This document shows positions 11,595 through 19,714 of a DNA stretch of 64,000 nt, piece by piece. This DNA is from Podarcis muralis (taxonomy: Eukaryota): positions 30,132,001-30,196,000 of the forward strand of contig NC_135665.1 of NCBI RefSeq assembly GCF_964188315.1, written 5' to 3'. How positions within the stretch are numbered: the first letter of the stretch is position 1; every line of letters starts with the position of its first letter. The translations under genes were made by a program, and so were the position numbers. The notes beneath the pieces were generated by a model, which was given only the letters and a program-made list of their open reading frames with translations, did no database searches and was not told the origin of the DNA.

Positions 11595-14500
11595 CTAAAC
11601 ACACAAGGGAAGGAGGGAAGAACAGATGGGAAGGGAAAAATAATAAAATTATTATTATTATTACACTGAACATGCCCCCCACAAAATCCTTCATACCACT
11701 ATAATAAGAGTACTAGGTTCCTGTTTTTATTTTAAAGCATATAAATGTAACAAATAAAACAAACAAATAAATATCTGAAATTCCACAAAACGTGGAAATC
11801 TCAAGAGTGCAAACTCCTGGAAAGTCTCCCTTAAAGTTCATTGGAAAATAACTTTAGTACTGGTTCACTCTTAAGGACGCCCCCCTTCTGAGATTGCGTG
11901 GCGAGTTCCCGTCCCCCCGCCAGTGGAAATAAAGACACATGACACAACTATTTAAGGTTAATGGGCTAAATATGGCCACAACTTTATTGGTCACAGGTGT
12001 TGAGCGGTATTGGCTTAGGCATTGGTCCTAACAGACTATCTGGCTTCAGCCCGTCCGCTTGAAGTCCAGGAAGGGTTAACCACCAGTAGGGGGAGTCCTG
12101 CTGATGCACATCAACTAGGAACTCCCCCGGGGTCACCGCTCGGGGGCATGCCTTAGGCCCTCACCTCCACTGGCTTCGGATAGGGCCATGCCCCCCGGAA
12201 TCCTTTATCGGACTACCCTTCGCAGGGCGGGTGATGGCGCTTCCTCCCCTCTTCCATCTACAAAACATTGTTAACCCAAGGTGTAAATTTGGCAGAGAAA
12301 TAGATGTTTAATTCCAAGCACAAAAGGACAAAGTTCCAGAGCAGGTTTGCCACCCTAGGAGAGTGCGATGATTGCTTTGACAGGACACTGACAACCGCTT
12401 GATTGTCAGTCCAGAAGCATACCTGGTGATTCCTGAAATGGTCAGCCCGCAAGTGCACCACAAATACGATAGGAAAAATTCTAAGAAGGTGAGGTCACGC
12501 ATGATAGTTTTTCCTTGCCAGCTGGTAGGCCAACGCTGAGCACACCAGTGCCCCCTAAAGTAGACACCAAACCCCAGGGAACCAGCTGCGTCAGACTGTA
12601 CCTGAAAGTCTGAACGCAGCATCAAATTGTCCTGCCGCTAAGAAATGCCATTGTACTCATCCAGGAACTTTAACCAAACCTCCAGGTCTGACTTGACCAC
12701 TTTAGAGAGGCGCAGTCCCACTGACAGCTTAGCCAATCGCCCACAAAAAGGGTGGCTAGCGGACACTACCCGGCATGCAAAATTGAGGTGACCGAAGAGT
12801 GATTGACTCTGCCCAAGGGTGACCTTCTTGAGAGGCAGAAGTTGCAGAATTAATTCCTTAAGTGCTGCTAGCCTCTCCCTTGAGGTTTGAGGGTATTGGC
12901 GGCGAGCGTTTGCTCGAGTGGCGGTTAGGCATTGATATGGGTATTGGTATGTAGATGATGGGGGGAGGCGGGAACCTGCCACGCAATGGTGTAATAACAG
13001 TTTATTTCACCAGCCATGTGAGGAGGGCACTGTCTGTCTAATATGTCCTAGCAAGAATTGGAACGAAATATATAATTAGTGCCTTTCCACCCAATCTTTT
13101 TTTGTCACTGTAGAAAAAATATATGCGGTTATGTGCAGTAACAGTACAAACATATATACCTCTAAGTTCTATTAAGCTAAATATAACCAACTTTGCTGAG
13201 TAGATATGCATAAGTCTGCATTATCAGTATCCCACAGCATACAATTGATAAACAGAAAAATAAATTGTAATATTAATATACCCACGGCAGAGTAGGCCAC
13301 TAAATTTTCTTAAAGTAAAACTCACACACATTCCATCCATCCAACATTCACTGTACTCTGTTTTAAAAGTCAAGGAAGGGGACTTTGGAACTTTTCATTC
13401 ATTCTGAAACAGAATTCTAAGAATGTTAGGTGCTGTATAACCCAGAAACCAGAGCACTTTTTTCCACCTTGCTCTTCAGCTTTTATGCTAGTCTATCAAG
13501 GACAATAAACTCAAGAAAACAATACGGTGCTACCTCGGGTTAAGTACTTAATTCGTTCCAGAGGTCCGTTCTTAACCTGAAATTGTACTTAACCTGCAGC
13601 ACCACTTTAGCTAATGGGGCCTCCTGCTGCCGCTGCGCCGCCGGAGCCCGATTTCTGTTCTTATCCTGAAGCAAAGTTCTTAACCTGAAGCACTATTTCT
13701 GGGTTAGCGGAGTCTGTAACCTGAAGTGTATGTAACCTGAAGCGTACGTAACCCGAGATACCACTGTACTTGTTAATGTGGTTTCTGTGATGTAAAAAGA
13801 AAGCCATCGGTTTTTACGTTATGTTATTTTGGAATGATCATATTTGAAAGTCCTGGCTGTTGAGACTACAGTGATGGGGGGGGGGCTATTTTCTTGTGTA
13901 CACACGATGTCAGGAGTCAAGGAGGCACTGTGCTTAAGAGGCACATTGTGTTCTCATAAAGGTTTATTGCCTTGGAGGTGGAGATGCACACATGTATGGC
14001 GTATTGCCATACATATATGTCATAAGACCAGATTAGGCTAAATTCAGGAGCTGTAGATAGACACCAGGGCATGCAGGATGTCTTTCAGGCCAATTGGCTG
14101 GATATGTGGACAGCTTGTCAACAAATTTGCTGGACAAGGTATGAGCTACTCTGTGTCTGAGTCTTGAATCCCCGAATGGAAATGAGTTCTCAAATCCTGG
14201 ATTCTGGGAACACTGCCTTCTCTACACCTCGGTACTTGATTATTATTTTTTAAGTCAGTTTCTACCAGATAAGCCAGGGGTAGGGAACCTCATTTCTGGG
14301 GGCCAAATATGGCCCTCAATGCCTCTCTGGCCTGAGGAATTTCCCCCAGGCCACACCCCTTCTGCACCAGCCATGGCCCTCACTAGCCCTAGTCCACACA
14401 TACATGTTTTTGCCTAGCGGGAATGCCTTGGGTCCCACCTACCACTAGCATGTGGCCCTTGAAACATTGGCCAGAAGGGAAGGCGGCCCTCAGTCTGGAA

Positions 14501-19714: not shown

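Follow-up and report, generated by a model that had tools for sequence, protein, structure and literature searches.

Nesting of SPATA9 in the last intron of RFESD in Podarcis lizards, very likely after duplication of the gene and decay of its original copy

The convergent genes RFESD and SPATA9 form an overlapping pair in human, while they are only adjacent in rodents (Makalowska et al., 2007; PMC2151771). Overlapping genes have been traced to translocation, to changes of gene structure, and to new genes that arise by duplication or retroposition (PMC2151771). Here we describe the RFESD/SPATA9 locus of Podarcis muralis in a stretch of 64,000 nucleotides (NCBI RefSeq assembly GCF_964188315.1, contig NC_135665.1, positions 30,132,001 to 30,196,000 of the forward strand). 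This whole stretch is called the window, and positions are counted from its first letter unless another locus is named. In the window, a complete copy of the testis gene SPATA9 lies antisense within the last intron of RFESD. The human and the Podarcis arrangements are alike in that the same convergent pair shares genomic space in one lineage. However, the human overlap, known here from PMC2151771, which gives no mechanism for it, contrasts with the situation in Podarcis, where a single intron encloses every SPATA9 coding exon, and where the nesting had an independent origin by duplication and the ancestral copy survives as a relic. The first-pass annotation of this DNA had described the human and mouse genes as mainly tail-to-tail neighbours, which fits the merely adjacent genes of rodents, but not the overlapping human pair. 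The comparison shows that the RFESD/SPATA9 pair is prone to lineage-specific overlap, and in Podarcis full nesting came about independently, via duplication at the DNA level and loss of the parental copy. A literature search returned no paper naming SPATA9 together with Podarcis.

Two other described nests are useful for comparison. The retrocopy of RPS27 in TSPAN9 (PMC2151771) resembles the Podarcis locus, because a new copy resides in an intron of its host on the opposite strand. In contrast to the retroposed gene, the Podarcis guest is a DNA-level copy, because it has kept all of its introns together with about 1.1 kb of sequence upstream. Insertion of SPATA9 as a retrocopy was considered and is ruled out by the four introns that the inner gene retains. 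Podarcis also differs from retroposed nests such as RPS27/TSPAN9 in that the host is the immediate neighbour of the guest, and that the parental copy has decayed and not the new one. The LRRTM genes in the introns of alpha-catenin genes are likewise opposite-strand guests within a host intron, but they represent old nests that are widely shared among vertebrates (PMC3933685), whereas the Podarcis nest is confined to one lizard genus and its "before" and "after" states are found in close relatives.

RFESD, a soluble ferredoxin of the Rieske type, is encoded on the minus strand of the window and consists of three coding exons, the first two of which are denoted A and B. The parts of the gene are as follows:

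19537-19714, minus strand: RFESD coding exon A, from the start methionine to ...CRCY and the first base of a histidine codon; Rieske_4 positions 1-41
19407-19441, minus strand: RFESD coding exon B, which starts within the histidine codon that is split by the A/B junction
11595-19406, minus strand: RFESD intron 2, 7,812 nt, which encloses the entire SPATA9 coding region in antisense
11325-11594, minus strand: RFESD last coding exon, through the stop codon; Rieske_4 positions 54-118

The borders are canonical (GT/AG), with GTATGC at the donor and ...TTTAG at the acceptor. Exons were searched singly and were joined only for the frame, the length, the identity, and the codon comparison of SPATA9 exons 3 and 4, with translations of 108 amino acids. 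When exons A, B, and the last exon are joined, they encode 160 amino acids that are identical to the P. muralis RefSeq protein XP_028604715.2. Compared with the Pfam family Rieske_4 (PF22543), exon A scored 68.7 bits (1-41) and the last exon 118.1 bits (54-118), both above the curated cut-off of 28.4 bits, and both cluster ligand motifs are present, CxH as CYH and CxxH as CPWH. The Rieske_4 domain is split between exon A and the last exon, so that the 7,812-nt intron separates the CxH half, on its upstream side, from the CPWH half, on its downstream side. The last exon is indispensable, because it encodes CPWH, one half of the cluster motif. A tblastn search revealed a single copy of this exon in the entire 64-kb window. 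The window is free of N, and its positions 1325-29714 are identical to the reverse complement of the P. muralis locus that we fetched as L008 (GCA_964188315.1, OZ076964.1; further fetched loci are numbered in the same way).

The UniProt entry A0A670J8B3 of P. muralis, a "Rieske" protein of 59 amino acids, represents RFESD exon A alone. Evidently, one annotation pipeline failed to bridge the 7.8-kb intron.

Within this intron, SPATA9 extends on the plus strand from 14078 to 18865. Its coding sequence (CDS) of 717 nt encodes 238 amino acids without any internal stop, and every exon border is AG/GT:

14078-14138, plus strand: SPATA9 coding exon 1; Pfam SPATA9 19.4 bits, under the cut-off
14901-14989, plus strand: SPATA9 coding exon 2, AG/GT borders
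15966-16193, plus strand: SPATA9 coding exon 3; Pfam SPATA9 36.3 bits
17342-17437, plus strand: SPATA9 coding exon 4; Pfam SPATA9 33.3 bits
18623-18865, plus strand: SPATA9 coding exon 5 with the stop codon, AG/GT borders

Exons 3 and 4 exceed the curated cut-off of the Pfam family SPATA9 (PF15824, 27 bits), and a precomputed match to the family is also attached to the 238-amino-acid gene call. Conservation of the nested gene extends to three Podarcis species, and the ratio of nonsynonymous to synonymous differences (pN/pS) amounts to 0.2-0.33 on exons 3-4. All SPATA9 coding exons are thus located in one intron of RFESD, on the opposite strand, as the first-pass annotation had proposed from the letters of the window; the exon coordinates, the identity of the 160-amino-acid protein to RefSeq, the intact open reading frame of 238 codons, and the NCBI gene calls agree. 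In locus L008 these calls let RFESD span 8,390 bp (10001-18390) and place the 238-amino-acid SPATA9 at 10850-15637 on the opposite strand, and therefore the nested gene models are already implicit in public annotation (RefSeq). The earlier statement that no second copy of the last exon exists between 18865 and 19407 was also borne out, as there is one last exon in 64 kb and no remnant in 18866-19406.

The nested gene contains several repeats. A (CA)n microsatellite is situated in SPATA9 intron 4 (18107-18154), and reads look cut at this site. Exon 4 is flanked by an inverted repeat pair of about 200-240 nt, at 17099-17332/17625-17869 in the nested gene and at 8038-8238/8528-8728 in a second, outer copy of SPATA9 sequence that is described below. 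These inverted repeats, which dominate the pile-ups of RNA reads, also bracket exon 4 in Lacerta and Zootoca, and the bracket is an old structure. An AATAAA at 18881 was considered as a new poly(A) signal of the inner gene and was dropped as a firm claim: the inner copy of P. raffonei has AAGAAA, and the motif belongs to the terminus of a repeat.

Transcription of the locus was followed in two stranded raw RNA runs that carry the label P. muralis, with the tissue unspecified, and the reads were placed on 13740-19739. Two other runs that were possibly RNA had the look of low-depth genomic or unspliced data and contributed nothing. Exon A was covered solely by pairs with the first mate on the plus strand (depth 69 and 23), which calibrates the strand of RFESD, and the A-B joint 19441>19537, with the ends CT..AC, was spanned by 65 and 20 reads. 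From 19406 to 13740, the RFESD-sense coverage in non-repeat bins decreased on the way to the last exon, from about 9 down to about 0.7, while the coverage of the opposite strand was between 0 and 2.1. The declining RFESD-sense coverage is as expected for a single long intron that is transcribed toward 11594. RFESD transcription thus passes across SPATA9.

The reads also revealed a side effect of the nesting on the host. A cryptic joint, 19407>18829, was supported by 14 reads of one run; its acceptor lies antisense in SPATA9 exon 5, and the frame stops after eight codons:

18400-18829, minus strand: cryptic RFESD exon used from exon B, of which only the first base, 18829, is defined

The cryptic splice is a by-product of the insertion, and its product would be devoid of the CPWH motif. 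Of about 65 exon-B donors, 14 were joined to this acceptor within the placed stretch, while about 50 left the stretch. Among the joints listed, no other well-supported one leaves exon B within 13740-19739, and therefore most exon-B donors must splice to a site below 13740. The joint 19407>11594 is thus inferred by elimination, as the only last exon in that direction is 11325-11594, and from the RefSeq models. Because this single last exon carries the CPWH motif, a functional protein would require that the polymerase reads 7.8 kb antisense through SPATA9 and that exon B is spliced to 11594.

Gene order was compared with loci found by a search with the RFESD last exon, followed by a search with the full-length match as second query; loci were fetched for the RFESD proteins returned, and lacertids are represented by the three genera Podarcis, Lacerta, and Zootoca. 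Nesting is present in P. muralis (L008) and P. raffonei (L002) according to the NCBI gene calls, and the exon order in P. lilfordi (L009) is A, B, e5, e4, e3, e2, e1, last exon, as determined with tblastn. In the following species the genes are not nested, RFESD is compact, and SPATA9 lies downstream of RFESD in convergent orientation, i.e., tail to tail:

Lacerta agilis (L005, L006): un-nested; RFESD coding span 2.08 kb, SPATA9 (CDS end) 2.65 kb downstream
Zootoca vivipara (L007): un-nested; RFESD coding span 2.1 kb, SPATA9 about 6 kb downstream
Rhineura floridana (L003): un-nested; RFESD coding span 1.66 kb, SPATA9 5.8 kb downstream
Phrynosoma platyrhinos (L001): un-nested; RFESD coding span 7.7 kb, SPATA9 about 5 kb downstream
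sea turtle (L010, L011): un-nested; RFESD coding span 1.37 kb, SPATA9 5.5 kb downstream

In Hemicordylus, RFESD spans 3.4 kb, and no SPATA9 is found within 10 kb. Judged by this gene order, the nest is a derived state, and Podarcis is so far the only genus that has it. A nest general among sauropsids had been named by the first-pass annotation as the result that would speak against its proposal, and the five non-Podarcis sauropsids turned out to be tail to tail. The human overlap (PMC2151771) could be taken as a hint that the nest was the original state of lacertids or sauropsids, and that the tail-to-tail order is secondary. This is very improbable, as the five tail-to-tail species include Lacerta and Zootoca and have a short and mutually alignable intron 2, as Podarcis carries a SPATA9 relic in the tail-to-tail position, and as the distance between the two Podarcis copies is smaller than that of either copy to Lacerta or Zootoca. 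Next to nothing speaks for an artefact of assembly, i.e., a misjoin or a collapsed duplication, and its probability is practically negligible: nothing specific points to it apart from the repeats and the duplication in the region, while the same order is found in three independent assemblies of three species, the window is free of gaps, and RFESD-sense RNA is continuous across the intron.

Two side observations were made on the related loci. In Lacerta agilis, CM020426.1 contains two near-identical RFESD-SPATA9 loci at 35.80 and 35.93 Mb, about 127 kb apart, which encode the same 160-amino-acid RFESD and are 0.6-1.4% diverged in their SPATA9 blocks; the explanation is either a large segmental duplication of recent date or a haplotype that the assembly left uncollapsed. 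In P. lilfordi, the deposited annotation of L009 13763-30321 merges a carnitine acyltransferase with SPATA9 to a product of 888 amino acids that overlaps RFESD, which is probably a read-through or merging artefact of the rearranged locus.

The relic in P. muralis is located on the far side of the RFESD last exon and is called the outer copy, in contrast to the nested inner copy. It comprises, together with its surroundings:

5830-8758, plus strand: outer SPATA9 relic in the ancestral tail-to-tail position, with an NCBI call of a 124-amino-acid SPATA9-family product
6309-6548: inverted 240-nt copy (96%) of 8912-9151, which occupies the expected site of relic exons 1-2
7341-7568, plus strand: relic copy of exon 3, open, 91% amino acid identity
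8245-8340, plus strand: relic copy of exon 4, open, 91% amino acid identity
about 8912-9955: intergenic element that separates RFESD from the ancestral SPATA9, conserved at 95% identity in Lacerta and 84% in Rhineura

Nucleotide self-comparison of the window showed that inner 12985-13476 and outer 5830-6315 are 94.3% identical, inner 15901-16325 and outer 7275-7703 are 93.7% identical, and inner 16800-17855 and outer 7714-8758 are 95.2% identical. The blocks have the same orientation, are colinear and 7.2-9.1 kb apart, and begin at a sharp boundary (12985/5830). Exon searches of the window did not find exons 1, 2, and 5 in the P. muralis relic. In P. raffonei the outer copy retains a gapped and degraded exon 5 (L002 20214-20399) between exon 4 and the intergenic element, in contrast to P. 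muralis, which has since lost this exon by deletion. The codon differences of the relic, 4 synonymous and 7 non-synonymous, are too few to judge neutrality.

Outward from the last exon, the parts of the outer copy and its surroundings follow each other as in Lacerta, Zootoca, and Rhineura, namely, 3' flank, intergenic element, exon 4, and exon 3. In addition, outer 6842-6956 and 7021-7274 match a SPATA9 intron of Lacerta and Zootoca and have no inner counterpart. The relic is therefore not a copy of the present inner gene, because it holds ancestral intron sequence that is missing from the latter. The colinearity and the intron matches mark the outer copy as the positional orthologue of the ancestral SPATA9 and the inner copy as the newcomer. 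The suggestion that the relic sits where the ancestral SPATA9 would have been is thus upheld by the outgroup-colinear flanks, by the intergenic element, and by the ancestral intron sequence. One might still argue that the relic was copied later, and in part, from the nested gene and that nesting came about by another route, e.g., relocation of the last exon, since exons 1, 2, and 5 are missing from the relic and its identity to the inner copy is 94-95%. This is highly unlikely in view of the ancestral intron sequence just mentioned, the P. raffonei relic in which exon 5 is still followed by the ancestral intergenic element, and the flanks of the last exon, which are colinear with the outgroups on both sides.

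The intergenic element is unusually well conserved. Its identity amounts to 95% in Lacerta, 93% in Zootoca, 84% over 650 bp in Rhineura, and 72-76% in Phrynosoma and Hemicordylus; for 8964-9955 the conservation is equal to or above that of the adjacent coding exons, and the nested SPATA9 copy is devoid of it. It could be an ancestral long 3' untranslated region of SPATA9 or a regulatory element. On the plus strand side of the relic, an NCBI call at about 1325-2749 belongs to a gene of the carnitine acyltransferase family (PF00755) with a product of 664 amino acids.

The time of the duplication can be narrowed down with a repeat that is inserted 15 bp past the SPATA9 stop codon in both Podarcis copies and is absent from Lacerta and Zootoca. 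The duplication is therefore younger than the split from Lacerta and Zootoca, because both copies have this repeat in common. In the exon-3 block, the distance between inner and outer copies is 0.054-0.067, compared to 0.024-0.026 between the orthologues of P. muralis and P. raffonei and 0.077-0.106 between Podarcis and Lacerta/Zootoca. In the exon-5 block the distance is 0.061-0.069. The inner copies group together with 96% support and the outer copies with 89% in the exon-3 block, and 15 sites of this block support orthology, while the two alternatives are supported by one site each. These comparisons place the duplication on the Podarcis stem, before the sampled species split.

The upstream and exon-4 blocks behave differently from the exon-3 block. 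In both of them, sites at which the inner and outer copies of one species agree are spatially clustered, and the exon-4 block of P. raffonei is 97.5% identical between the copies, without gaps. Sites of this kind at which P. muralis is unlike P. raffonei are concentrated at 12985-13200 and 16800-17626 versus 5830-6050 and 7714-8529. The pattern resembles gene conversion that has continued after speciation between the working gene and the relic, and because of it the upstream and exon-4 blocks understate the age of the duplication.

The ancestral intron 2 of RFESD had a length of about 1.5 kb, as in Lacerta and Zootoca, and comparison with these genera reveals both breakpoints, the junction J1 on the side of the last exon and the junction J2 on the side of exon B:

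11595-11892, minus strand: surviving 3' part of ancestral intron 2, about 300 bp, which matches Lacerta L005 11472-11808, Zootoca, and Rhineura
11893-12987: J1 element with 26-nt terminal inverted repeats, which fills J1 exactly and has no target-site duplication
12985-13476, plus strand: duplicated upstream segment U in its inner copy, homologous to 5830-6315 from a point about 1.1 kb 5' of the SPATA9 ATG
18881-18922: stub of the pre-duplication repeat that was inserted 15 bp past the SPATA9 stop, full length in the outer copy of P. raffonei
18923-19026: 104-bp filler at J2, conserved across three Podarcis species
19027-19273: repeat similar to a short interspersed element (SINE) at J2, which abuts the 5' intron remnant
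19274-19406, minus strand: surviving 5' part of ancestral intron 2, 95-133 bp, which matches Zootoca L007 10309-10444 and Lacerta L005 10310-10404

The middle part of intron 2, about 1.07 kb that are present in Lacerta and Zootoca and align to Rhineura, has no match in the window or in P. raffonei L002. J1 joins the intron remnant to the duplicated upstream segment, which starts at 12985-12988 with an ambiguity of 3 bp. At J2, the homology between the inner and outer copies runs from the stop codon to about 18922 and ends within the shared repeat, and the 104-bp filler has no match in the outgroup loci or elsewhere in the window. The J1 element, which the first-pass annotation had not noted, has a palindromic form in P. 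raffonei with a length of about 310 bp, and a matching element is found at the same junction in P. lilfordi; further copies were found neither in the window nor in the fetched loci. In maize, Zhang, Zuo and Peterson (in PLoS Genet, 2013) reportedly found that alternative transposition of Ac/Ds elements leads to tandem duplications with a transposon at the junction. J1 is similar, as an element with terminal inverted repeats is located exactly at a duplication junction without a target-site duplication. In contrast to Ac/Ds, the element has no other copy in the sequences at hand and could equally be a filler from break repair.

P. muralis has, in addition, a specific insert of about 870 bp within the J1 element (about 12090-12958). 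The open reading frames of the element and the insert gave only Pfam matches below threshold (RVT_3, RNase H-like, E=0.05; minus strand of the insert), and the insert is probably a fragment of a retroelement.

Taken together, these results make it very likely that SPATA9 was duplicated into intron 2 of RFESD on the Podarcis stem and that the original copy decayed afterwards. After the split from Lacerta and Zootoca, a segment of about 6 kb would have been duplicated in direct orientation, comprising the whole intron-containing SPATA9 with about 1.1 kb 5' of the ATG and about 50 bp beyond the stop codon. The copy would have landed beyond the last exon of RFESD, inside intron 2, with the loss of about 1.07 kb of the intron. 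The inner copy would then have stayed intact, while the original would have lost exons 1-2, and its exon 5 would have degraded (P. raffonei) or been deleted (P. muralis). RFESD kept a single last exon.

As to the order of the events, we infer a path of two steps. The first step would be a tandem duplication with one end about 300 bp upstream of the last exon and the other 1.1 kb upstream of SPATA9, so that the tandem unit would consist of the 3' end of intron 2, the last exon, the intergenic region, and SPATA9. The second step would be a deletion that began about 130 bp inside intron 2, ended about 50 bp beyond the stop of the inner SPATA9, and took the inner last exon with it. Both junctions carry repeat-derived filler. 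The window contains two adjacent copies in direct orientation with the sharp boundary at 12985/5830, as expected for a tandem duplication, and this path needs no extra assumptions to account for the direct orientation, the short distance, and the missing 1.07 kb. The strongest competitor is a duplicative insertion of SPATA9 alone in one step, with a simultaneous 1.07-kb deletion at the target, so that a second last exon never existed; possible mechanisms are template switching during replication, repair of a break with filler DNA, or transposition of the inverted-repeat element in an aberrant manner. A single step would account for the fact that a second last exon or its flanks have left no trace, that foreign filler is found at both junctions (at J1 the inverted-repeat element without target-site duplication, at J2 104 bp and the SINE), and that the duplicated unit is almost exactly the gene with 1.1 kb upstream. 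However, it requires a simultaneous target deletion, which comes free with the two-step tandem path, and the direct orientation and the landing a few kb from the source are the default of tandem duplications, which are the commoner class. We give the single step a substantial but less than even chance and lean toward the tandem duplication followed by deletion.

Several points weigh against the reading presented here. No remnant of a second last exon or of a second intergenic region exists in the 64 kb or in 18866-19406, and therefore the tandem path has to assume a later deletion. The tandem duplication with loss of the inner last exon that the first-pass annotation had put forward is accordingly confirmed in part: SPATA9 is duplicated, the outer copy is decayed, and the loss of intron sequence is explained, but the second last exon has left no trace. 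In P. lilfordi, no SPATA9 relic was found within 10 kb downstream of RFESD. The sampling of lacertids is confined to three genera, and the patterns of conversion in the upstream segment U and in the exon-4 block make dating by divergence approximate. SPATA9-sense RNA is near zero outside of repeats in the two runs of unspecified tissue. And the joint 19407>11594 is not displayed by reads that were placed on 13740-19739, while the RefSeq models that include it are maybe partly guided by homology.

Vertebrate genomes contain many nested and overlapping gene pairs, and their origins usually have to be rebuilt from comparisons of distant species. In Podarcis, the transition from neighbour to nest took place within one genus, with un-nested sister genera, a decayed parental copy, and two readable breakpoints, and the host RFESD shows a splicing side effect of the insertion. 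The rearranged locus also explains several oddities of annotation, namely, the 59-amino-acid RFESD fragment in UniProt, the fusion model of P. lilfordi, and the RefSeq product of 124 amino acids at the relic. The locus does not represent a new kind of biology; it is a compact and well-dated case for the formation of a nest and its cost. One might speculate that a repeat-associated rearrangement created the nest, that RFESD transcription antisense through SPATA9, with part of it mis-spliced into the antisense SPATA9 exon, now couples the two genes mechanically, and that convergent transcription in testis might damp either of them, a proposal that we regard as doubtful at present. If it were true, Lacerta and Zootoca on the one hand and Podarcis on the other would constitute a natural before-and-after experiment on the effects of nesting on expression and splicing.

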